A stretch of DNA of 64,000 nucleotides from Piromyces finnis finn. Its lineage: Eukaryota; Fungi; Neocallimastigomycota. The stretch spans positions 1,178,001 through 1,242,000 of the forward strand of contig MCFH01000002.1 in assembly GCA_002104945.1 (NCBI GenBank). The letters run 5' to 3'. Positions 26,967 through 61,584 of the stretch are shown here, one piece after another. The position numbers and the translations under genes are program-made. The notes beneath the pieces were generated by a model that saw only the letters and a list, made by a program, of their open reading frames with translations, was not told the origin of the DNA and did not search any database. The number at the start of each line of letters is the position of its first letter. The stretch's first letter is position 1.

Positions 26967-28156
26967 ACATAAAAAACAAAATCAAAAAAACATTAGAAAA
27001 CAAAATATATTTAATCCAATAACGAATAACGCATTTATCTATCATATCTTAACTATATCATAAATATAATATTCCAGTAATTTAATAATATATCTCGCTA
27101 TATTTTTATTTTTTTTTTTAAAAAAAAAAATCTATTGAATAATTATTGATAATTATTAAACAGGAAAAAATATGTATATAAAAATGAAGTAATTATCCTT
27201 TAGCATATCGATTAGATTTTATTTTTTAAAAAACGTTTTTTTTGTATTGATCTAGAAATGGAAATGGAGGAAAAACAACTATTTGATAAAATATACAAAA
27301 AAATATATTTCACCTTATATATATACGTATTATAAATCACTTATCTATTAAGCTAGACTTTATATAATAGTATAAAAATAGATAAATTTTGTTTATAAAA
27401 TAATAATTATTTATTATTTTATTTCTCTTTCTTTTTTTTATATATTTTTATTTTTCGAATTTCAAAAAAATATAAAGTTTTAATTTTTAATTTTGTATAC
27501 CCTTTTTTAATATAATAATTTATAATGTTATGAAAAAGCAAAATATAAATTACTATAGAAAATTTATATTTATTCTAGAAAAATTGCCTATATTTCTTTT
27601 ATAATTAAAAAGATTTTAAACTTAATAAAAAAAAAAAAATAATATAAAAATATAAATATTATAAATAATTCATGACATAAATATTAAAAAATTGAATTGA
27701 ATATTATATTTTCTATATTTTTTTTTTTTTTTTTTTTTTATTTCCTTTTTGAAAAGAATCATTTATTTATTATATTTTTCTTTAAATATTCATTTTTAAA
27801 AAAAAAAATTTTTTTTTATAAAGTTTTATTTTATAATGTAAATGTCGTTTTTTTAATAATTTCTTTTTCGAATAAAAAGTATTTGCAGTAATTAATATTC
27901 ATGTGTATATAATAAAGATATATATAAAAAAAATTATTATTAGATTTCTTTATTGAAAGGAAAGGGAAAGAAATAATACTACTATATAAAAATAGTTTTT
28001 TTTTTTTTTTTTTTTTGAAACATTTGCTTAAAATCAAACGTAATGTTAATATGAATGAAAGGCAAACTTTCTTTAAATAAGGATTAAAAAAGTTTTTTTT
28101 TAACGATAGTTTTAGCAATTTTTTTTTTTTTTTTTTTTTTGCTTTTAGTAGGCAAT

Positions 28157-31100
28157 CCCTCTTGGGAACGTGCCTTCATTTATTTAATAAATGTAGTTTC
28201 TCAAGGGGGTCTACTCATGCTCATGGTACTGAGAGAGTAGAAAAAATTAAATCCAAGCATTGCGCAATGGATGCTTGGTTAGTCTTTAAGGGAAAATTAT
28301 TAGGACTAAGCTCATGGTACTGAGCGATTAAAAAACATTTTATTCATCGAATTTAAGTATTTGATGAATAAGTTGAATGTTTGATACTCAGGTAAGTTTG
28401 TATAGTATTTAATTAGAAGAGTAATACATTTTGTTGCTGTATTTTTTTCTTTATTCATGTATTCATGTAGTACTACTCTTCTCTTGTAAGAATCCAATGT
28501 AGTCAACTTTAGCATTTGCATTGTATTTTTATATTCATGTGGCTATTGTTGTATTGTTTCTTGTAAGAGACTGATTCACTCTACATCATGTAAAAATACT
28601 ATTCACAAGCTTTCTGGTGTCGACATTCTTGATTCAAATTTTTTACCAATTTAAATATTTAATGAAAAGTAAAGTCAAACAATTTTAGTGTCAAAAAGCG
28701 AATCGAATTTACTAACAACAAACCAAAACTAGAATTTTTAAAGAAAATTTACAACTAGAATTCAAAAAAAAGAAACTTTAAACAAAGCATCGTAACAATT
28801 TTTGTTCTATCCAGTACTTTTAAGAAGAGAGAGAGAGACAGATTTTTTTCCATATACGTTATATTTGTAATTTTTATTAGTATTTATTTTATATTCAATA
28901 TTTTTTAATTAGAATTTATTATCATGTCAGTCCTTTATATTAAAGATAAGAATTATATCAGACGTGGTACCCGGTCTTATGGTATCCCCTTAGATGATAT
29001 TCGCTCCTTCTTTATCCGTGGTATTCGATCATGGTCAGTAAATATGCTATGGGAAAAACTCGAGGTTATTCTAGAAGATAAATTTAATTCAGTTATTAGT
29101 GTTAAATATTTTCAAACTTTCAATGATCACTTTTTCTTAGTCAAGGTTCATGGTTCATCAAAAGATTGTATTAAAATATTACACATGTTAAAGAAGAAAC
29201 TTTCAGTTACCTCAATTTCCTTTTCAGCTCGTAGTAGAAGGAATCACAAATACACTTTTTCCACTCTCAAACGTAAAATTTTAGTTTCTAATAAACATCA
29301 TCATTCTATTCAACAATCATTTCAACAATCAGTTCAACAATCTCATCAACAATCCGATCTTCAACAAGATCTTCAACAAGATCTTCAACAAGTTTCCCAT
29401 CATGAAAATATTCCAGATCTACAGCAAACACAATTTCAATCTCAACATTCAACAATTAATTCTTATAGTTCTATCAACTCTGATAACAGTTCAATAGTTG
29501 ATAGTTCTTCAGTTTCACAGCCATCTAGTAATAGTTCTACTTATTCCTCTGATGCATCATCCATTAATAACGATGACTTTAATAATAATAATAATAGCAA
29601 CGATTCTTCCTCATCCAACAAGCCTGATAACTTTTCTTTTTGTCTTAGTTGGAACACCAATGGGTGGAATCACGAAAAGAGAGATAGTATTAGCTATTTC
29701 ACAGCTATTTTCAAACCATTATTTTTATGTTTCCAAGAAACTGGTAATGGTTCTGGATCGAATACAGATTATCCTTGTCGTGTTACTTTGCGAAACTATA
29801 GACACTTTTTCAAGAAAGCTGACGAATCAGTTCCGGGAATGAGAGGTTTATATTTAGGTTTTCACAATTCGTGTCAAGCTTCACTTGAAAACTTTTCTGG
29901 AAAGTATATTATTTCTATTTATACTTTTAGTCTTTGGAATAGATTCAAATGCTCGATTGGAAATGTTTATATGCCTCATAGTCATCACAACATCTATGTT
30001 GATCATGCAAAGTTAGAAGTTCGCTTGTGGTTACAAACTCATTCATCCCATCCATCGATTCTTGTTGGTGATTTTAATATGTCTAAAGTAAAATTATCCA
30101 ACTGGTTATCAACTAATGGATTAGGAGATTGGGAAATTCTTCCGCTTAGAGGGTCTACTATCTCTTGGACTCGAGGTGATCAATCTTCCGACATTGACCA
30201 TGCTCTTATCAATTCGAAGATGAAAGATCTTATTCACTCAGGATCATTTATAAATAATTTTTATCCTGTATCAGACCATAAGCCACTTCTTATTAATGGT
30301 AAAATTATTCCTATGGAAGATTTTTCTAATGACTTTAATGTTCCTAAGAAAATTCTGAAATGGAATAGATTAAAATGTATTGAGGAAAAGGAATCTATTC
30401 TTAGTCATAATAAATTCCAAATTCTTTCAGCAAAATTCAACGATCCTAATGTTTCTACAGATGAACTTTCCAAAGAGTTTACTTCAACTGCTTTTTCAAT
30501 TGCAGACGAGCTCAGTATTACCTCAGCAAATAATGTTATAAAGTCTTCATTTCATATTTCACAACAAATTTTTAATCTTCAAAAAATCAAAATGAAGTTG
30601 TATAAGAGATTTAAAAAAGAAAGAATTTATGATATAGATGAATTTATTAAAAGAATTAAAATCTACCGTAAGCTCATTGATTACATCCACAAAAGATGTA
30701 ATGAATTTAGGAAACAAGAATATCTTCATTGGATTAAAACAGGATGTGAGTATATGAAGAGTCATAATCCTAAGAAGGCCTGGAAATGGATCAAGAAAAC
30801 TGCAAAAATTGGAAAAGATTCTTTCTTTATTGCTCAACCAATTAAAAATAAAAATGGAGAATTAGTTGTTGCTACAGAAGAACAACTAGATGTGTGGCAT
30901 GATCATTTCGAAAATCTTGCATCAGATCCAAGTGGTGTAAGTCTTGATTTGGAGCATTGGTATGAAGAACCAATGAATAAACGTTTTTCACTTCCTATGC
31001 TTGATGAGTGGGATATCAACCAAGATATTAGTATTGATGAAGTCAAGTCAGCTATCCTCTCTACTCCAAATTATAAAGCATCAGGTCCGGATGGTATTCC

Positions 31101-33702
31101 AATTGAATTTTACAAAGCATTAATTCCATCAAGTAATGATTCTAATAATGCTACAGGTAATAATTCTTCTGGTAATACTACTTCAGATAATGATGCTCAT
31201 GGTTTAAATTTTATTCTTAAATTATTTAACCGTATTTGGGATGGAGATTTCCCCAACTCATGGAATGAATCCAGTATTGTTTCTATTCCTAAGAAGGGAG
31301 ATTTGACAGATTGTGATAACTATCGAGGTATATCACTTATCAATAATGGTATTAAGTTGATCTCCAAAATTGTCACCACTAGAATCTCAGAATATGGTCT
31401 AAAGAATAATTTCATTAGACCTGAACAATTTGGTTTTCGAAAAAAGGAAGAAAGTATCAGTCTTTTCATTTCAATCCAAGAAATATGCCGTAGACGTCAA
31501 TTAGATAATAAAGAGACATATTTGGCCTTTTTAGATCTCAGGAAAGCATACGATTCAGTCCCAATCGGTAATATTCTCCATAAATTAGATTGTTTAGGAA
31601 TCCGAGGTAAGAGTTTACAATTTATCAAAAATTTATATTTAACATCTAAGGCTAATTTCAAATTAGATGAACAATTCTCGAAATCTTTTGATGTGAAGAA
31701 AGGAGTCCGTCAAGGATGCCCTCTTTCTCCTATTCTCTTTAATCTCTTTATTAATGATATATTTAAAGAGTGCGAAGATCTAGGAGTCAGTTTAGGTGAC
31801 ACTCGATGCTGTGGTGGACTTTTTGCAGATGATATAGTTATTTGTGCTCCAACAAGAGGATGCTTAAAAAAGATGCTAAGAAGAGTTAATGAATGGGCCT
31901 TGTATAATGAAATGGAATTTGGTATCCAGAAATGTTCAACGATGGTGATTCGTCCTGAATCAATAGAAAATCAGAACAAGAGAGATCCAACATTTTACTT
32001 AGCAGGACAACCCATTCCAACTACTGATTGTTATACTTATCTTGGTGTTCCATTTGATAAGAATCTGTCCCTTAAATCAGTAATTAAAGCTCTTAATAAC
32101 AAGGTTTTGAAAGGACTTTTTTCAGTCAGTAAATTCTTAAGAAATCCTAATATTCCTATTCCTTTCAAAAAACTAGTACTTAACTCACAAGTGATTAGCA
32201 GAGTTTCATACTTTGCACCATTACTTGGATCCAACAAAGCCAGGTCTAGAATTGCTCAGAAGCATGTTAACAAAGGAATACGATGGGTTGCCGGAGTTCA
32301 TAAAGCTGTATCGTTTATATCTTTATACTCTATCTCAAAAGATTTGAATATTCCTCCATTGTCAGCCAAATGTGCGTTAGCTCAGGTTAGATGTTTTAAC
32401 AAATGGAAAAACTCAAATTGTATTATCTCATACCTTGTCAATTACATTCCTAAATTTAGAAAATACACATGGTGCAAATCAAGTAGGACACTTGATAAAA
32501 AATTAAAGAAACATGGAGATGTTAAAGCAGTTAAAAACTTTTATTGGAAAGATCTCAAAGGGAATTCAATCAAAGCGCAATATTATGATGATAATAAATT
32601 TATTGAAACTAAAGATTTTATTAAATTATGTTATGAGTACCCAGAGTTTGCCTATGGCTTCTACTGGCTATTGAAAGCAAGAAGCGGATACAAGTTGGAT
32701 GCTAGAGTTGCCAAAGCTGCTAAATTTGTTGATCCAGTTTGTCCTAACTACTGTCCATGTTGCAAGTGTGGTGTTCAAAGTATTAAACATTGGTTATTAG
32801 ATTGTCCAACATTTAGAGATATCCGTATTAAACATTATGATTCCATAGTCCAGCTACTAAATTTTTTCAGTCAACGTAATTCCAATAGTCCTATCAATAA
32901 TAATGAAAATGTTAATATCAGTAGAGATAGCAATAACATTAATAGTAATAGTAACAATAGTAGTAATAACAATAGTAATAGTAACAATAGTAATAATAAC
33001 AATAGTAGTAATAGAAATAGTAATAATAACAATAGTAGTTATAGAAATAATAATACTAGTAATGATAGCAATAGTGAAGATAATAATTCTAATTTAGATA
33101 GTAATTTAGTTAATGATAGTAATAGTTCTAATAATCCGGTGAATATTAATGTGTATGATTATTCTAGTGTGTGCAGTAAAATATTTAAATTCCTTCTTGG
33201 GGGAAGAAGTTTTAACAATATTAATTACAATTCAAGGGAATGGAAAGAACTTTGTAAGCGTCAGATTCAATCTGGTACTAATGAAGGAACACCATTCTTG
33301 ACGGTAACCGCGGAACCTCTAACCAAAATCATGCCTTTTGCTATTGGCCAGCAATGGACAATGTTCAAAAGGTTTGAAGCAACATCCAAGAGCGTCAATG
33401 CTGAAGAAACAGTAAGACAGGCCAGGAGGGCCAGCGCAACCAATGGAGATCATAATTTTGTTCCATGACAAAATTTTGATCTTTGGCTCGGTGTCCCATT
33501 GGAAGTCAAATACAATTATTATACTTTAGTATGATAGTGGCTTTCTTACTTTAATTAAAATTACTAGAATACATTATACCCAATTTTTATTCATTTGTGT
33601 TTATTTAAACATATTTTTTTTATTTTTATTTATTTTTAATTTTTTATTACATGTATTATAATTTTAATTAAATTAATAATAAAGTTTAAAATATTTGATG
33701 CC

Positions 33703-33741
<39 letters not shown>
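28157..33741 (+). mobile_element. Full-length non-LTR retrotransposon (LINE), single ORF, structured 5' UTR, 3' UTR and poly(A) tail
   Basis: Preceded by TTTAGTAGGCAAT (28144-28156), which recurs as a TSD partner at 33839-33851. About 770-nt 5' UTR, ORF 28924-33468, 3' UTR ending ...GATGCCGTT, then poly(A) to 33741. Confidence 0.95.
28924..33468 (+). CDS. LINE polyprotein: RRM-like N-terminus, APE endonuclease, reverse transcriptase, C-terminal CCHC zinc knuckle (intact ORF, 1514 aa)
   Basis: APE motifs WNTNG, FQET, GDFN, IDH, SDH. RT motifs KASGPDGIP, NYRGISL, FLDLRKAYDSV, GVRQGCPLSP, LFADD, YTYLG. Zinc knuckle CPCCKCGVQSIKHWLLDC. Confidence 0.97.
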   Translation: MSVLYIKDKNYIRRGTRSYGIPLDDIRSFFIRGIRSWSVNMLWEKLEVILEDKFNSVISVKYFQTFNDHFFLVKVHGSSKDCIKILHMLKKKLSVTSISFSARSRRNHKYTFSTLKRKILVSNKHHHSIQQSFQQSVQQSHQQSDLQQDLQQDLQQVSHHENIPDLQQTQFQSQHSTINSYSSINSDNSSIVDSSSVSQPSSNSSTYSSDASSINNDDFNNNNNSNDSSSSNKPDNFSFCLSWNTNGWNHEKRDSISYFTAIFKPLFLCFQETGNGSGSNTDYPCRVTLRNYRHFFKKADESVPGMRGLYLGFHNSCQASLENFSGKYIISIYTFSLWNRFKCSIGNVYMPHSHHNIYVDHAKLEVRLWLQTHSSHPSILVGDFNMSKVKLSNWLSTNGLGDWEILPLRGSTISWTRGDQSSDIDHALINSKMKDLIHSGSFINNFYPVSDHKPLLINGKIIPMEDFSNDFNVPKKILKWNRLKCIEEKESILSHNKFQILSAKFNDPNVSTDELSKEFTSTAFSIADELSITSANNVIKSSFHISQQIFNLQKIKMKLYKRFKKERIYDIDEFIKRIKIYRKLIDYIHKRCNEFRKQEYLHWIKTGCEYMKSHNPKKAWKWIKKTAKIGKDSFFIAQPIKNKNGELVVATEEQLDVWHDHFENLASDPSGVSLDLEHWYEEPMNKRFSLPMLDEWDINQDISIDEVKSAILSTPNYKASGPDGIPIEFYKALIPSSNDSNNATGNNSSGNTTSDNDAHGLNFILKLFNRIWDGDFPNSWNESSIVSIPKKGDLTDCDNYRGISLINNGIKLISKIVTTRISEYGLKNNFIRPEQFGFRKKEESISLFISIQEICRRRQLDNKETYLAFLDLRKAYDSVPIGNILHKLDCLGIRGKSLQFIKNLYLTSKANFKLDEQFSKSFDVKKGVRQGCPLSPILFNLFINDIFKECEDLGVSLGDTRCCGGLFADDIVICAPTRGCLKKMLRRVNEWALYNEMEFGIQKCSTMVIRPESIENQNKRDPTFYLAGQPIPTTDCYTYLGVPFDKNLSLKSVIKALNNKVLKGLFSVSKFLRNPNIPIPFKKLVLNSQVISRVSYFAPLLGSNKARSRIAQKHVNKGIRWVAGVHKAVSFISLYSISKDLNIPPLSAKCALAQVRCFNKWKNSNCIISYLVNYIPKFRKYTWCKSSRTLDKKLKKHGDVKAVKNFYWKDLKGNSIKAQYYDDNKFIETKDFIKLCYEYPEFAYGFYWLLKARSGYKLDARVAKAAKFVDPVCPNYCPCCKCGVQSIKHWLLDCPTFRDIRIKHYDSIVQLLNFFSQRNSNSPINNNENVNISRDSNNINSNSNNSSNNNSNSNNSNNNNSSNRNSNNNNSSYRNNNTSNDSNSEDNNSNLDSNLVNDSNSSNNPVNINVYDYSSVCSKIFKFLLGGRSFNNINYNSREWKELCKRQIQSGTNEGTPFLTVTAEPLTKIMPFAIGQQWTMFKRFEATSKSVNAEETVRQARRASATNGDHNFVP

Positions 33742-33743
<2 letters not shown>

Positions 33744-33850
33744 TTTAATACTCACCTGTTGATTCATTTTATTTCATTCCTCTAACGATTTCTTCATACT
33801 AATAAATTATGAATATCAAGAATTTTTACATGGTTACTATTGCCTACTAA

Positions 33851-33851
<1 letters not shown>

Positions 33852-33881
<30 letters not shown>

Positions 33882-36800
33882 GGCATCAAATATTTTAAAC
33901 TTTATTATTAATTTAATTAAAATTATAATACATGTAATAAAAAATTAAAAATAAATAAAAATAAAAAAAAATATGTTTAAATAAACACAAATGAATAAAA
34001 ATTGGGTATAATGTATTCTAGTAATTTTAATTAAAGTAAGAAAGCCACTATCATACTAAAGTATAATAATTGTATTTGACTTCCAATGGGACACCGAGCC
34101 AAAGATCAAAATTTTGTCATGGAACAAAATTATGATCTCCATTGGTTGCGCTGGCCCTCCTGGCCTGTCTTACTGTTTCTTCAGCATTGACGCTCTTGGA
34201 TGTTGCTTCAAACCTTTTGAACATTGACCATTGCTGGCCAATAGCAAAAGGCATGATTTTGGTTAGAAGTTCCGCGGTTACCGTCAAGAATGGTGTTCCT
34301 TCATTAGTACCAGATTGAATCTGACGCTTACAAAGTTCTTTCCATACCCTTGAATTGTAATTGATATTGTTAAAACTTCTTCCCCCAAGAAGGAATTTAA
34401 ATATTTTACTGCACACACTAGAATAATCATACACATTAATATTCACCGGATTATTAGAACTATTACTATCATTAATTAAATTACTATCTAAATTAGAATT
34501 ATTATCTTCACTATTGCTATCATTACTAGTATTATTATTTCTATAACTACTATTGTTATTATTACTATTTCTATTACTACTATTGTTATTATTACTATTG
34601 TTACTATTACTATTGTTATTACTACTATTGTTACTATTACTATTAATGTTATTGCTATCTCTACTGATATTATCAATTTCATTATTATTGATAGGACTAT
34701 TGGAATTACGTTGACTGAAAAAATTAAGTAGCTGGACTATGGAATCATAATGTTTAATACGGATATCTCTAAATGTTGGACAATCTAATAACCAATGTTT
34801 AATACTTTGAACACCACACTTGCAACATGGACAGTAGTTAGGACAAACTGGATCAACAAATTTAGCAGCTTTGGCAACTCTAGCATCCAACTTATATCCG
34901 CTTCTTGCTTTCAATAGCCAGTAGAAGCCATAGGCAAACTCTGGGTATTCATAACATAATTTAATAAAATCTTTAGTTTCAATAAATTTATTATCATCAT
35001 AATATTGCGCTTTGATTGAATTCCCTTTGAGATCTTTCCAATAAAAGTTTTTAACTGCTTTAACATCTCCATGTTTCTTTAGTTTTTTATCAAGTGTCCT
35101 ACTTGATTTGCACCACGTGTATTTTCTAAATTTAGGAATGTAATTGAGAAGGTGTGAGATAATACAATTTGAGTTTTTCCATTTGTTAAAACATCTAACC
35201 TGAGCTAACGCACATTTGGCTGACAATGGAGGAATATTCAAATCTTTTGAGATAGAGTATAAAGATATAAACGATACAGCTTTATGAACTCCGGCAACCC
35301 ATCGTATTCCTTTGTTAACATGCTTCTGAGCAATCCTAGACCTAGCTTTGTTGGATCCAAGTAATGGTGCAAAGTATGAAACTCTGCTAATCACTTGAGA
35401 GTTAAGTACTAGTTTTTTGAAAGGAATAGGAATATTAGGATTTCTTAAGAATTTACTGACTGAGAAAAGTCCTTTCAAAACCTTGTTATTAAGAACTTTA
35501 ATTACTGGTTTAAGGGACAAATTCTTATCAAATGGAACACCAAGATAAGTATAACAATCAGTAGTTGGAATGGGTTGTCCTGCTAAGTAAAATGTTGGAT
35601 CTCTCTTGTTCTGATTTTCTATTGATTCAGGACGAATCACCATCGTTGAACATTTCTGGATACCAAATTCCATTTCATTATACAATGCCCATTCATTAAC
35701 TCTTCTAAGCATCTTTTTTAAGCATCCTCTTGTTGGAGCACAAATAACTATATCATCTGCAAAAAGTCCACCACAGCATCGAGTGTCACCTAAACTGACT
35801 CCGAGATCTTCACACTCTTTAAATATATCATTAATAAAGAGATTAAAAAGAATAGGAGAAAGTGGGCAACCTTGACGGACTCCTTTCTTCACATCAAAAG
35901 ATTTCGAGAATTGTCCATCTAATTTGACATTAGCCTTAGATGTTAAATATAAATTTTTGATAAATTGTTAACTCTTACCTCGGATTCCTAAACAATCTAA
36001 TTTATGGAGAATATTACCGATTGGGACTGAATCGTATGCTTTCCTGAGATCTAAAAAGGCCAAATATGTCTCTTTATTATCTAATTGACGTCTACGGCAT
36101 ATTTCTTGGATTGAAATGAAAAGACTGATACTTTCTTCCTTTTTTCGAAAACCAAATTGTTCAGGTCTAATGAAATTATTCTTTAGACCATATTCTGAGA
36201 TTCTAGTGGTGACAATTTTGGAGATCAACTTAATACCATTATTGATAAGTGATATACCTCGATAGTTATCACAATCTGTCAAATCTCCCTTCTTAGGAAT
36301 AGAAACAATACTGGATTCATTCCATGAGTTGGGGAAATCTCCATCCCAAATACGGTTAAATAATTTAAGAATAAAATTTAAACCATGAGCATCATTATCT
36401 GAAGTAGTATTACCAGAAGAATTATTATCTGTAGCATTATTAGAATCATTACTTGATGGAATTAATGCTTTGTAAAATTCAATTGGAATACCATCCGGAC
36501 CTGATGCTTTATAATTTGGAGTAGAGAGGATAGCTGACTTGACTTCATCAATACTAATATCTTGGTTGATATCCCACTCATCAAGCATAGGAAGTGAAAA
36601 ACGTTTATTCATTGGTTCTTCATACCAATTCTCCAAATCAAGACTTACACCACTTGGATCTGATGCAAGGTTTTCGAAATGATCATGCCACACTTCAAGT
36701 TGTTCTTCCGTAGCAACAACTAATTCTCCATTTTTATTTTTAATTGGTTGAGCAATAAAGAAAGAATCTTTTCCAATTTTTGCAGTTTTCTTGATCCATT

Positions 36801-39075: not shown

Positions 39076-42000
39076 TTAATTTGAATTGTCATTATTTATA
39101 ATTTGAAGTTTGGCAAAGTTAATAAAGATTTGTTCTAAAGATGTTTGACTAAAAGTATAGTCAGAAATTAAACCGGATGCTTTACATCCTTCCATAGCTT
39201 CAAATATTTTGCCAATACCCTTTTGAATTGAAATCTCATAATTTACACGATCGTGAGATTTAATTTCTTTCTTATAGACATTACCTAAAATACCAACTTC
39301 TTCAATCATCTTAGTATGGAAGGCTTCAATATCCTTTGATTGAACTTCTAAATTGTAACCTTCACCATATTTCATTTTAATATGTTCTGGTGATCCAATA
39401 CATTTTAATCTTCCATTAATTAAAATACCAAGACGATCACATAAGAATTCAGCTTCTTCCATAGAGTGAGTTGTCATAATAATAGCAGTATTATTTTCTT
39501 TTTTGGTTTCCTTAATAATATTCCAGATGTATCTTCTGGTTGATGGATCCATACCAGCAGTTGGTTCATCTAATAAAACTTGATTTGGACAACCACAAAT
39601 AGCCATTAATAAACAAAGCTTACGCTTAGTACCACCACTTAATTTAGAAGCATGCTTTCCTTCATGTTCTTCTAAACCACAACTACGAATGTATTGTGTA
39701 GTATATTCTTTAGCTAATTCATCTGAATAACCACGAATCTTTAAGAAAAATTCAAGATGTTCACGAATAGTTAATTCTTTCCAGAAGGTATCGTTTTGTG
39801 GACAATAACCAAGAGAAATATTATTATATCTAGCAATATGAGATTCTACACCATCATAATAAATCTTACCAGTAGTTTGAGGAATAGTGGAAGTAATCAT
39901 GTTTAATGTTGTTGATTTACCAGCACCATTTGGTCCTAATAAACCAAAACATTCATGCTTATTAATTCCAAATGAAACATCTTCAACTGCAGTTCTTACA
40001 TATGTATTTCTAGTGTATGGTGATTTGTGAACATCACCAAATTTATATTTAGTTCTTTCTTTAATTATCTTCTTTTCTTCTGGATTACTTGGTAAGCTTA
40101 CTCTATAATCTTTACTTATTTGAAGAGTACTAATTGGAAGGTTGTTATAGTTGGACTTAATGTTTAAATATTCATTATAGACATCTTCATCACCTTCTTG
40201 AAGTAATCTTTTATTTTCTTCAGTACTTTCTGGAGTAGGTGTATGAATATCACTGGCATTGGATTGATTCTTTCTGGCATCACATTTTAATAATAAAATA
40301 AAGTAAATAATAATATCAACAACTAAAACAAGAATTAATGGGGTAATTCCAGAATTAAATTTTAATAAGTAGTTAAAACCAAGATCTAACTTCAAAAGTT
40401 TCATTAAGAATTGAATGGTGAATAAGGCATTAAAAATACCCATAATGGCATATGGTGGATTAATTAATCCAAATATAATTTCTACAATAATAGCTGTATT
40501 TGAATACATTTTATTTGGATCAGTGGATTGATATTGATTATTGATTAATGAAAAAGCGATAACACCAACATAGGCTGGAAGAAGATTAATTAATGCCATA
40601 AATGAATTTGCAGTATCTACTTTATCAAAGAAGAAACTAATAACATATTGATAAATTAATGTAGCAAAAGACCTATTATATACCATATATAAAAAAGAGT
40701 TTAGCATTGAATAAATAAAATATATTTTTAATATATATATGTATATTTTCATATATTTATTCTTTTACTTACCACAAGACATTTGTTATTAATAAAATGA
40801 TTATAACGTTAACGTCAAGGAATACTTGAGGTTGGAAAATAATACCAACAATAACTATACATACACTAGTAACAAATGTAAGACTTGCATCAGTTAAAAG
40901 AGAAGATATCCAATAATTAAATCTTGATACACCATTTAATTGAAGTTGTTGAAGTAATTGATTAACTCTTTCTCTTACAATTAATGGGCCGTATAAAGAA
41001 ATACCAGTAAGTAAAGCAGCTCCTATATAAATACCAATAATAACACTAGCAGCTGTAACAAATACATAGTTTCCATATGAAAATGGATGAGATTTAGTGA
41101 CAATTCTTTCATTGATATTATTAGAGGCGAGAATAGTATTTGAGAGGGCATTCATTGTTGCAGGTAATGAATGACTCATGGATGTATTTAAGTAAATATT
41201 GAAATTGTAACTGTCATTTTCAAGTGAACCTGATACAGAAGAAACATAGTATGGTTCTTTGTTTACAGTTTTACCTATTTTATTTAATTCTTCATTGGAA
41301 TAGCTTTTTAATGCATCTGCACCAACCATATTTCCATATAATTCTTTGAAATTAGGAATATTTGTTTGAGTTGTATCAACATTCCAGAGTGAACCATTGT
41401 ACATAGTTGGTGAAATTTCTTTTGGTTTAAATGTTACAATTTGAACATTATCCATTGCTTTAAGAAGAATAAAGGTAATTATAGTAATAATAACCGGTGT
41501 TAAAAGGGCACTAACGGCAAATGATTTATTGTGGAAGAAAATCTTTAATCTGAATTTTATTAAAGTAATTATTTTTTGAATATTGGTTAATCCTTGAACT
41601 TCTTTTAAGTTTGGTAATCCTTCATTAGTATTAATAATAAAAGCATCACTTCCAGTGTTTTCTTTTGGTGTTTCTTCAGTATGATCATCTTCTAAACGAA
41701 TAAATAATTCTTCCAAGGTTGGCATTGTTAAAGCGTAATTTTTAATAAGTTTATTTTCTCCAGCATAAGATTCTATTTCATTAAATAAATTAGAAAATTC
41801 AGATGTAGAAGAAATTGGTAACTTCCAAGTTCTCATTTCAACATCAGTATTCTTTGATTGCTTTTCAGAATCAATAATATATTTACTTTCAGGAATGTAT
41901 TTCTTAATGATATCATCAACTTGATCACAAGAATTACTTTCAATATCAAGACTGTATTCCATGTTAAAGTGATTCTTTAAATAAACACTAGTACCTAAAC

Positions 42001-44311
42001 AACGAATTTTACCATGATTCAAAATAAGTTTACGATCTGCAAGAATATCAGCTTCATCCATATAATGAGTAGTTAAAAATATAACTCTTCCCATCTTTTT
42101 CTTTGATAAAAGATCCCAAATCTTTCTTCTTGATAATGGATCAAGACCTGTAGTTGGTTCATCTAAGAAAATGTATTTTGGATTACCAATAATAGCAATA
42201 GCAATACATAACTTTCTTTTTTGACCACCACTAAGATTTATAACCTTATCATCTTTTTTGTGTTCTAAATCAACTTCCTTTAAAATTTCATTGATATCAA
42301 CTTTGACATTTTTAATCATTGAGAAAATCTTAATATGATCGCTAACGGTAAGTTCATCAAAAAGAATGTTTGTTTGAGGGCAGACACCTTTTTTATAAAT
42401 TAAAAATGTAATCAAAACGTCAAAAAAAATATTTTAGATTATATTTATAAAATTATAATTTATACAATATTCAAGTCTATTATTTTCTATACGTTTTATA
42501 AAGCAATTATTATATATATATTATATATATATTTTTAAGTTTTAATTTATATTTACCGAAATCTCTACGAATTTGTGTAGTATTTTTTGCAATATCAGTA
42601 CCATCGTAATATATATTACCACCAGAAGTATTAATTAAACCAATCATCATTTGTATTAATGTTGTTTTACCAGCACCATTATGACCTAAAATACAGAAAA
42701 TTTCATCTTTATAAACTTTAAAATTAACGTGATTAACAGCTAAGAATTGTTCTTTTTTGTTTTTAGAATTACTGTTTTCAGATTTTTTCTCAAATTGTTT
42801 TGAGACATTGGAAATTTCAACTAAACATTTTTCATTTTTTCTTAAATCTTCTTCTATATCTTGTTCATAATTATTATCTGATTCATTAATAATATTGTGA
42901 CTTGAAGAACGTTTTAGTCTTAAAGTAGAATAATCATCCAATAAATATTCAAATAATATTGATAAACCGAAATAAAGAATATTATTAAATAACAATATTA
43001 AAATATATAAACCAATATCGCTATTAAAAACAGTCTTAAAAGTAATATATTCTCTTATGTCTTCCTTTTTACTTATTTCTTCCATTATATTTCCCATTGC
43101 AACAGGAGATATAAGAAAACTGAAGATTAATTTTAATTTTCTGTCTAAATAGGAAATAGCGAGATAAGCAACACAAATGAATGTGGAAGTTGTACCAGCA
43201 AATGAAGCTGCAGTCTTTGCTTTCTTAAAGAAAGTAGAAAATATAAATCCAATACCACAGTTAGATAAACCGAATAAGGTAATGATAATGAAAAGAATAA
43301 TAGGATTTATATACTCGAAGGATTTTACAATTACTAAGAAAGCAGTTATTATTAATGCTGTAAAAACAATAATTACAAAGTAAACAATTTCCCATGATAA
43401 CCAAAAAACTGATGAATTAACACCAGACATAAGCATACCTTCCTTTATTTTCTTTTCTTTTTCTTCAACTATAAATGTAACAATTATAATAATATGAGAT
43501 AAGAAAATAAAGTTCATATATAAGGAGTTCAATTTTGGACCCATTCCATTCATACCAACATAATTAATTGGTGGTTTACTTAAATCACCTAAAGTAGATT
43601 TAAATGAAATTGGTTTCTTGGTTTTTATACTAATAATTGTTGAGTCCACAAGAGATTGAAGATAAGAAAATTTATAGTAACCTGTATCCACGATACCAGC
43701 TCTATTTTCACCATAATTACCAATTGGAGCTTTTTCTGGGTCAGTAACTTCTGTTCCATTAATTCTAATAGTGTAAGTGAATAAATTATCTTCAAAAATA
43801 ATACCAGCAAAAAGGTTTTTGTGTTCATCATTGTAATTTTCTAATTCCTTTTCATTATTGAATCGAACATACTGATAATTATTTTCTTTCAATAATGGAT
43901 CCATCATTACATTTGAAATTACTTCATCATTACCATTATTAGGCAATACAAAACCTATTGTATTTTGTTCTGGATTAATTAAAAAAAATTTTGAAATATC
44001 ACCTATTTCTCTAGAATCTTCTGCTTCGTATAATACTGATTTTCCTGTGAATCTTAAAATAACTATTTTATTTTATTTTATTAGAATATATATTTATGGA
44101 TAGTTATAAATAAAAAAAAAAATTTTTTTGTTAATATTTAAATATATTTATTTTTTTCATTATATTTTTTACTTTTAATTAAATACATACAAATGAAGAA
44201 AACAAAATATATTGGAAGAAATAATTCCTGAAATGTTTTTTTCTTATTATTTTTTTTTATTAAAATATTTCTGTAGGTAACAGCCTTTAATTGATTTAAA
44301 AATAATGACAT
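39076..44311 (-). CDS. Full-size ABCA-subfamily ABC transporter (TMD-NBD-TMD-NBD), 4 exons
   Basis: N-terminus MSLFLNQLKAVTYRNILIKK...ELFLP. Walker A motifs GHNGAGKTT and GPNGAGKST, signatures LSGGQKRKL and LSGGTKRKL, LDEPT, TTHYMDEA / TTHSMEEA, and the ABCA-typical TLEELF / SLEQIF motifs. Confidence 0.93.
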
Positions 44312-59021: not shown

Positions 59022-60095
59022 GTGTAAATAAGTTATAGATATTTTTTGCCTTTTTTATATTATTTTAAATTTTTTCATATTTAACTATTCATTAATATAA
59101 TTGAATTTTTAATTATTATCAAATTTTTAAAAATATTATCATTATCATTGTTCTTAATATTGTTTTATAATATCTTTTATTATTTAATTTTTATTTAATA
59201 TAATTGTGATTATTATTAAATAATTATTCAATATTACTATAATCAAACCCACTTTAAAAATTAATCATTTATTCGATTTATAATAAAAATGATAATTTTA
59301 TAAAAAGTGTTAACAATTGCTAACAATAGTATTTTTTGTTTTTTTCATGGATTAGATGTTGCATAGTTAAAACAAAAAAAAAAAAATAAAATTAAAACTA
59401 AAAAAAGTTATATAAAAAAATATCATTATATTAACATAAATCAATAAAATAATTAATTAATTAATTGATCAAACAATTTTTATTATTATTATTATTTCTA
59501 TTATTATTATTATCTTTTACTACAATTATCATTATTATTTATAATTAACTTTTTATTATTGCTAAACACTTTGAAAAGAATTATTATATGTATATATTTT
59601 TATTAAAGTTAATTCAAATTATAAAAGTATAAACGTATAAACTATTATTTCCTCTTATTTCATGACATTATATACAATATATGACAATTAAAAAAAATAC
59701 TTTAAATTTTATTTCATAATAAAAAAAAAAAATGGATATTCAATGTAATTTATAAATTATATGTAATATCAATTTATTGAAGATATAATTAAATATTATG
59801 AAAGTAACTTCATGAACAGTAAAAAAAAAAAAAAAAAAGGGTTTGTTTAAATCTTATATTATTAAATCATTCATATATAAATTTTTGTTATAGAAAATTA
59901 CAATTAAAATAAGAAATTGTAAACATCAAAATAATAGTTTTTCTAATTATAAACAATTGTCAATTTTTTTTTTCTTCACATCATCTTGGGTATAAGTTTT
60001 TTAAAGTTTATAAAGAATTACTAATTTATAATAATGAAAATACTATAAAAATATATATTGGTAATCAATTAAAACAAAACACGATACTTAATTTT

Positions 60096-60565
60096 CGACC
60101 CCGCAGATGTCAGTGCCTGTGGATTTTCCCACTGGGTTTGCCATGGGTTGGGTTATGATATTCAGGTAAGTATAAATGAACTTTCTAATTTACTACTATG
60201 ATAATAACACTCGTCTAGCCGGCCTGAGAGGGTCTAGTGTACATGGTACATTCCAAATTAGAACTTAATAAGTGGTGACTTAGGCTATGCCAAAAACACA
60301 TAATATTCCTTAATCAATTTAAGTGTAAACATTAGGGGGCGGTTGACACGTGATCAAATTGACTATAAGAGGCTTAGCATTGTAGTTGTGAAATATCGTA
60401 CAACGACATGCATCTAATGTACATGGATTAAGTGAGCGTCGAAGCTGAAGAAACAGTATGACAGACCAGGAGGGTCACAACCACCTAGCAATAGGAATGA
60501 GCCAACGTTTCTCTAAGAACCACCATTGGAGCTAACTCTGATCGATGGGAGAAATGCACTCGGAA

Positions 60566-60622
<57 letters not shown>
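60096..60622 (+). mobile_element. SINE-like non-autonomous retroelement (473-bp body plus 54-nt poly(A)), flanked by a 12-bp TSD
   Basis: A GC-richer island in about 85% AT DNA. ATACTTAATTTT at 60084-60095 and 60623-60634, poly(A) 60569-60622, no ORF, and a 38/43-nt match to the LINE 3' region. Confidence 0.9.
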
Positions 60623-60626
<4 letters not shown>

Positions 60627-61584
60627 TTAATTTTTACATTTTATTTTAATCATTATATTTTCTTATTCTCCCTTTCCAGTGTGATTAAAGGTGATTATAC
60701 TATCATTATACATATGCAACATTTTGAGATATTTTTTTATAATTAAAAATACTTTAAAAATAATTGTATAAATAAAACCATAATAATTTAAATTTTAAAC
60801 TTAAAATTGTTTATTTTTTTTAATAGAATCTCTTTAAAGTTTTATTTTAATATATTTTATTTTTATTAATTAAATAGTTTAATTAAGGTATAATTTGATT
60901 AAGAAAGTGTTACTAATTAATTTTAATACTAATAAAGTATATTTACTATGAAAATACTAAATAAAAATACAATTATAATAACTGTTATAAGGATAATAGT
61001 ATTAATATAATGTTAATAACTAAAATAAAAAAAACTATATATATGTAAAAAAAAAGAAACTTAGAATTGAAATGAAATTTGAAATCTATTAAAAACTTTA
61101 ATTTATATAGTTACAGTAATAAAGTAGTATCATTACTTTTAATTATACAATAAATTATTAAATTTAAATTATTGAAATATTGTTAAAGGCCAGATTTATA
61201 TATTTAAATCATTTATTATTATATGTGAAGATAGGTATAGAAAAAAGCATATTTCTCTCTTTTTTTATTTTATCTTTTTTTTTTCTTTAATATAATACTA
61301 TTTTTTTTTTTTTTATAAAGTAATATTAAAAATATAATTAGTATTAATTACAAATTGTTTTTATGGAGAGATTTCTCAAAATTAAGATTATATAATAATT
61401 TTGAAACATTGTATTTATCTGTGTAATTATAAAGAATATATTGAATATAATAAAAATTATGTAATATATATTTATATATTTATTTTTTCATTTCGATTTT
61501 TATATATTATAGTTTTTTATAATATTAAATAATCATACATAAATATAAATATTAGTAAATAATAAGTAACATTTAACTTTAGAA

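Follow-up and report, generated by a model that had tools for sequence, protein, structure and literature searches.

Alu, B1 and B2 are poly(A) SINEs that depend on L1, a partner with an APE endonuclease, and they are flanked by target site duplications (TSDs) of ~7-20 bp. L1-type LINEs are thought to require just the poly(A) tail, and the mammalian SINEs that depend on L1 share nothing with it beyond this A tail. RIME/ingi and HAL1 are internally deleted LINE derivatives, the defining trait of which is that they share their 5' and 3' termini with the LINE. In stringent LINE/SINE pairs, such as UnaL2 and UnaSINE1 of eel, both partners carry the same 3' tail stem-loop (PMC5135761, PMC3747384). 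Fungal SINEs are known from Ascomycota and include MgSINE (472 bp, ~100 copies), Foxy (~160 copies), Egr1, EGH24, nrs1 and the AfuSINEs (PMC5063351).

The element analysed here lies in a 64-kb window of Piromyces finnis DNA (contig MCFH01000002.1, positions 1,178,001 to 1,242,000), which is extremely AT-rich (12-33% GC per kb). To our knowledge almost no mobile elements have been described in anaerobic gut fungi, we found no report of a SINE in the literature on this group (Neocallimastigomycota), and the family is probably undescribed for it. A defined SINE/LINE pair in such a fungus, apparently still active, would help repeat annotation, provide strain markers and perhaps serve as a tool for insertional genetics.

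The Piromyces SINE is an ordinary kind of element. Like the SINEs of Ascomycota it is short and non-coding, has TSDs, occurs in tens to hundreds of copies and is presumed to depend on a LINE, and at 535 nt and ~270 copies it falls within their range of sizes and copy numbers. However, its host is an anaerobic gut fungus and not an ascomycete, and while most of the ascomycete families are described as tRNA- or 5S-derived, only a B box can be recognised here, with no tRNA fold. With Alu, B1 and B2 it has in common the poly(A) tail, an L1-like APE partner, a mild T|A bias and a predominance of full-length copies over a 5'-truncated minority, but unlike them it also bears a copy of the LINE ORF end, 53 nt long. 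As with UnaL2/UnaSINE1, both partners contain a short LINE-derived segment that has small hairpins and may be a recognition handle, although in Piromyces this segment is internal and not 3' terminal, and both partners end in poly(A). It resembles RIME/ingi and HAL1 in being non-autonomous, ~0.5 kb long and provided with a TSD and tail as in the LINE, but it differs from them in lacking the LINE termini and holding the internal 53-nt stretch only.

The insert in the window is a very recent, front-truncated copy of this 535-nt non-coding SINE. Between 60084 and 60634 the order is TSD, a body of 473 nt (~42% GC), A54-55 and the same 12-mer again, with the following features:

60084 to 60095, + strand: 5' TSD, ATACTTAATTTT; its last two T could be element bases +61/+62
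60096 to 60568, + strand: SINE body, consensus 63-535 (full element 535 nt); at least 40 other copies in the genome are 100% identical to it
60096 to 60102, + strand: B-box remnant CGACCCC, left over from GGTTCGACCCC at consensus +59 to +69
60166 to 60218, + strand: intron-like AT-rich segment of 53 nt, GTAAGT ... TAATAAC ... TAG, consensus +133 to +185
60434 to 60483, + strand: module common to the SINE and the LINE ORF end, with two small hairpins
60569 to 60622/3, + strand: uninterrupted poly(A) tail of 54 nt (54-55)
60623 to 60634, + strand: 3' TSD, second ATACTTAATTTT

The initial annotation of this locus, made from the letters alone, had described an exact 12-bp TSD, a 54-nt uninterrupted poly(A) and the absence of an ORF, and these observations stand. 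The TSD may be 10-12 bp long, because the TT at its end also matches +61/+62 of the element and this microhomology makes the 5' junction ambiguous by 2 nt, and the longest ORF, even in the full 535-nt element, is 53 aa. Position 60096 had been taken as the 5' end of the element, which proved incorrect; the window copy begins at consensus +61 to +63, with the first ~62 nt of the element missing.

We searched the genome to which the window belongs (56.46 Mb, 232 contigs) and obtained 850 first-look candidates for the 473-nt body, with at least 40 places 100% identical to the window copy across all 473 nt. In 26 of 30 of these identical copies, whose flanks were inspected, there was a common 5' start (GTCGTTCC...) ~62 nt upstream of the start of the window copy, and since these copies reach one shared start the unit is defined as 535 nt plus poly(A), with L002:1439-1973 as reference full-length copy. 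The sequence 5' of the common start was unrelated between copies, and three others in this sample started internally, at +15, +19 and +60. Genome-wide counts of exact or near-exact matches climbed monotonically along the element, from 200 for a 31-mer of the 5' head through 225 for a 30-mer of the middle to 268 for a 33-mer of the 3' end, with no excess of ends and with zero matches for the reversed-pattern controls. There are thus ~270 copies in the genome, about three quarters of them full length, and this large proportion is typical for a SINE and not for a LINE. Automatic detection found TSDs of 11-16 bp in 24 of the 30 copies (13 bp, the mode, in 11, and 12 bp in 7), and TSDs were seen by eye in four further copies (28/30 in total), leaving one copy with an imperfect TSD and one with none. 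Poly(A) tails in the same sample were 6-132 nt long. The base before the TSD was T, and its first base A, in about two thirds of copies each, a mild preference given that each of these bases makes up about 41% of the genome.

We also fetched 20 copies that have the 3' end but lack the head pattern, with identities of 92.8-100%. The starts were scattered in 17 of them (+24, 24, 33, 35, 112, 187, 217, 295, 335, 346, 396, 412, 420, 438, 459, 485 and 503), while the other three reached +2 to +4 with variant heads, and none of the 20 continued into LINE sequence. Single copies showed further variation: one has an extra G at its 5' end (L025), in one the distance from the head to position 302 is reduced by 55 nt, the loss not being that of the intron-like stretch (C112:337734-338217), and at C150:542410-542550 two heads lie 110 nt apart. 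At L030:1409-1500 a full-length SINE sits within a LINE 3' part, with 19 extra bases (GGGGCGTAAAAGAAAGAAG) between TSD and +1, which could reflect a start further upstream, a template switch or bases added without a template.

The element is therefore shorter than ~700 bp and non-coding, dispersed with its own TSDs and a common 5' end, and A-rich at its tail. From the counts, the identity, the TSDs and the scattered starts without LINE continuation we conclude that this is a young SINE family, and neither a retrocopy nor a LINE 3' fragment, the two alternatives that had been named at the outset. The family is real, very young and apparently still active; the proposal of a multi-copy, ORF-less, poly(A), TSD-flanked non-autonomous family alongside a young L1-like LINE is borne out. 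That the insert might be a processed retrocopy of a host mRNA or ncRNA is very improbable; poly(A) and TSD would fit, and the intron-like stretch could stem from an unspliced host transcript, but dispersed, mostly identical copies with one 5' start and TSDs of their own, together with the lack of any Rfam family match, speak against it. A host gene could nevertheless be the ancient source of the SINE body.

The window also holds the candidate autonomous partner, a full-length L1-like LINE:

28157 to 33742, + strand: LINE1, full-length, L1-like, with RT domain and poly(A) tail
28924 to 33468, + strand: intact LINE1 ORF of 1514 aa, with RT domain
33389 to 33442, + strand: shared module as it occurs in the LINE, in the final ~26 codons of the ORF; its hairpin 2 is GGCC/GGCC
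34143 to 34195, - strand: module in a second, tail-to-tail LINE copy

The second copy (LINE2) encodes an APE endonuclease domain and a weak zf-RVT match, and the best solved relative of the LINE protein is human L1 ORF2p (E = 1.6e-31). At least 40 genomic LINE copies are 98-99% identical across the 5' 770 nt. LINE TSDs are ~13 bp (two measured), the same length as the mode of the SINE; one of the two, of ~12-13 bp, belongs to a 5'-truncated LINE copy in L037. The 13-bp word TTTAGTAGGCAAT occurs in both the 5' flank of LINE1 (28144-28156) and the 3' flank of the inverted LINE2 (33842-33854), which fits an inversion by recombination between two LINE copies.

The LINE family displayed several other arrangements. 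In some copies the first ~124 nt (28157-28280 in the window) are present as 2-4 tandem repeats directly upstream of a full 5' end, for example at C189:393367-393941 and C57:547260-547626, resembling the promoter monomers of mouse L1. At L034 and L037 the poly(A) tail of one LINE directly or nearly abuts the 5' start of the next, giving head-to-tail arrays, and the LINE 3' module is repeated at intervals of ~942 nt at C1:1537993-1550399, suggesting that LINE 3' parts are arrayed there in tandem. The LINE 3' fragment at L015:658-985 (- strand) is older, with ~90% identity and a different end, and has a tRNA-like word, GGTTCGAATCC, just past a short A-run.

The TSDs, tails, T|A bias and truncations of the SINE are together the signature of target-primed reverse transcription by an APE-type LINE. 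Taking these observations together, we consider the window insert to be a dead-on-arrival, 5'-truncated copy (~61/63 to 535) of a poly(A) SINE with ~270 copies, and give this overall explanation a probability of roughly 0.85. The LINE probably mobilises the SINE in trans, as suggested indirectly by the equal TSD length, the poly(A), the shared 53-nt module and the youth of both families; against it speaks the lack of similarity between the last 82 nt of the SINE and the LINE 3' UTR. In such a mechanism, SINE RNA would be recognised through its poly(A) tail, possibly helped by the two-hairpin module, and would be reverse-transcribed at a nicked target by the endonuclease/RT of the young L1-like LINE in the window. 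For the window copy, reverse transcription or 5' joining would have stopped ~62 nt early, at the TT microhomology. As the head was lost in this copy it could not source further copies if the promoter sits in the head, and on that condition it would be inert.

We compared the SINE and LINE by Smith-Waterman alignment against shuffles, and found one significant stretch only, between SINE +401 to +450 (60434-60483) and LINE 33389-33442, with 85% identity over 53 nt and a score of 66 compared with a maximum of 27 in 300 shuffles. Similarity between SINE +1 to +395 and the LINE 5' UTR was at chance level, and nothing in the last 82 nt of the SINE (+454 to +535, plus A's) rose above shuffles when compared with the LINE 3' UTR. 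The short modules reported at the outset as common to both elements are thus upheld at the ORF end and not at the 5' end. The 5' likeness to the LINE that had been described (a hairpin first, an echo of CATGGTAC, and TCAGGTAAGT) did not exceed shuffles, and since these similarities are at chance level, the 5' hairpin and the CATGGTAC echo are no evidence of kinship. Likewise, the word TGTACATGG is indeed present twice in the window copy, but by our own arithmetic ~0.4 pairs of identical 9-mers are expected by chance in 473 nt. The long 5' hairpin from which a structured RNA had been proposed also failed to stand out; the first hairpin of the window copy (60096-60165) folds at -22.2 kcal/mol (z = -1.1), with 19 of 200 shuffles folding as well, and the whole SINE folds no better than shuffles (z = +0.26). 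The SINE is thus linked to the LINE by the 53-nt module alone, and by none of the 5' features. This is new here, as are the 535-nt unit with its true 5' end, the profile of copy number along the element and a B box hidden by truncation.

These comparisons also bear on the suggestion that the SINE is an internally deleted (sister) LINE that kept the LINE 5' and 3' ends, in the manner of RIME/ingi. The homology of the 53-nt stretch to the LINE ORF end and short word matches near the GTAAGT site and the CATGGTAC word would agree with such an origin, but SINE 1-395 and 454-535 are not above shuffles against the LINE 5' UTR and 3' region, respectively; no shared 5' end was found, and the final 82 nt of the SINE do not resemble the LINE 3' UTR. 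Furthermore, the head, middle and tail counts are smooth, with no surplus of ends, 0/20 headless copies run on into a LINE, and the module had two main forms among the 100 matches listed. We therefore regard this origin as improbable; a longer LINE with the exact ends of the SINE, for which a search had been proposed, left no sign in the headless copies, the end counts or the module variants.

A degenerate pattern gave 782 module matches in the genome, and the 100 listed contained the two main forms plus a rare single-mutant LINE form. Relative to the tail, the module is placed 85-135 nt upstream in the SINE and ~265-320 nt upstream in the LINE, where it is within coding sequence. In the SINE its hairpins are GCUG/CAGU with the loop AAGAAA and GACC/GGUC with the loop AGGAG, and their energies are not unusual compared with shuffles (z = -0.4 and -1.5). 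In hairpin 2 a double change keeps a pair, A-U in the GACC/GGUC of the SINE and G-C in the GGCC/GGCC of the LINE, and it is on this single compensatory pair that a structural conservation of the module would rest. C-to-T changes in the module of an older, 90% identical LINE fragment leave G·U pairs, which proves little because any C-to-T in a G-C pair gives G·U. Metagenome scans, one using the shared module and the other the 3' end of the SINE, returned 0 matches, and hence no related sequences in which covariation could be assessed. Because the LINE frame hits a stop in the SINE, the donor was likely the LINE, and template switching from a LINE RNA is the most likely way in which the module was acquired.

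A role for the 53-nt module as a recognition handle for the LINE protein is plausible. A stronger proposal, which we offer tentatively and hold to be rather unlikely, is that the L1-type LINE recognises a two-hairpin handle in its own last codons and that the SINE succeeds by copying this handle internally. If so, the handle would sit where the just-finished LINE protein could grasp its RNA, and the SINE would unite a head bearing a Pol III B box, a body that is intron-like and unspliced, and a handle derived from LINE coding sequence; we know of no description of such an architecture for poly(A) SINEs. The internal LINE-derived module would, moreover, provide a simple test of whether L1-like enzymes choose templates by more than poly(A).

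We then considered how the SINE is transcribed. In the full element GGTTCGACCCC at +59 to +69 is a perfect match to the B-box consensus GGTTCGANNCC, and of 20,000 shuffles of the SINE only 21 contained a strict B box at any position. In type-2 Pol III promoters, the B box of tRNA genes lies at a similar distance from the transcription start; the distance of the SINE B box from the 5' end is tRNA-gene-like. There is no consensus A box, the best A-box-like site matching 6 of 9 specified positions at +15, but this weak site lies exactly 44 nt upstream of the B box, which is the tRNA spacing. The window copy shows no B box because truncation cuts through GGTTCGACCCC, the loss of both G's having destroyed it. 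The initial annotation had reported no recognisable Pol III A/B boxes, which holds for the truncated copy and not for the full element, and given the perfect B box the label of a non-tRNA element with no Pol III boxes is unsafe.

We lean towards transcription of SINE master copies by Pol III, from an internal promoter that would comprise the B box at +59 to +69 and the weak A-box-like site. However, T runs inside the unit (T5 at +11 to +15 and T4 at +91 to +94) argue against Pol III, because local tRNA genes are often followed first by such runs; among 20 with a T-run no more than 40 nt downstream, the first was T4 or T5 in 13. An appreciable but smaller chance attaches to the same SINE family being transcribed by Pol II into a non-coding RNA that is capped and polyadenylated, as has been reported for SVA elements or Entamoeba SINEs, with the B-box match fortuitous and GTAAGT a U1-binding or 5' splice-site-like element common to the LINE 5' UTR. 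Consistent with this are the T5 and T4 runs within the transcribed unit, the missing A box and the lack of tRNA, 5S, 7SL or snRNA homology, and the extra 5' G of one copy and the 19 extra 5' bases of another would also fit capped transcripts. Against it stand the perfect B box, rare in shuffles, the absence of AATAAA near the SINE 3' end, and the chance-level SINE/LINE 5' similarity. Other routes than Pol III or Pol II take up the rest of the probability.

The intron-like stretch at +133 to +185 bears on the same choice. It has consensus-like 5' splice, branch and 3' splice sites, and a similar CAG|GTAAGT occurs in the LINE 5' UTR, both of which favour Pol II; none of about 270 SINE copies lacks the stretch, however, despite these good signals, which fits an RNA that never meets the spliceosome. 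The LINE is equally unspliced, no copies without the similar 5' UTR stretch being found in the genome, and because this stretch is also never missing, the absence of spliced SINE copies cannot separate Pol II from Pol III.

The origin of the head was examined with tRNA and RNA-family models. Rfam searches yielded no credible match for the window copy, for the full copy or for the head by itself, the Rfam tRNA model did not match 91 nt of the head at E<=10, and ARAGORN at default thresholds detected no tRNA in the SINE. At a relaxed threshold (75%) ARAGORN drew a cloverleaf, but 5.7% of plain shuffles equalled it, as did 31% of those in which the B box was preserved. Derivation from a tRNA (SINE2) was not supported, the head neither aligning nor folding as a tRNA beyond B-box-preserving shuffles. 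An origin from the D-arm of tRNA-Ser/Leu was also set aside, as the D-arm motif had four genomic matches, none of them in a tRNA gene. A genome-wide Rfam tRNA search gave few tRNA species, too few for a search for a parent. The head may represent a tRNA-like sequence that has been badly eroded, or else a fragment of another Pol III gene.

Two observations concern other loci. Our tRNA search, which yielded ~2,900 first-look candidates in 56 Mb, included tRNA-Glu(TTC) and tRNA-Arg(TCT) arranged head-to-tail and separated by just 9-10 nt that contain no T-run (L045, L047, L051 and L072), and these pairs look like dimeric, co-transcribed tRNA genes. In the window itself, positions 39076-43946 on the - strand hold a large ABCA-like ABC transporter gene, with ABC_tran and ABC2_membrane_3 domains, spread over three long ORFs that are presumably its exons.
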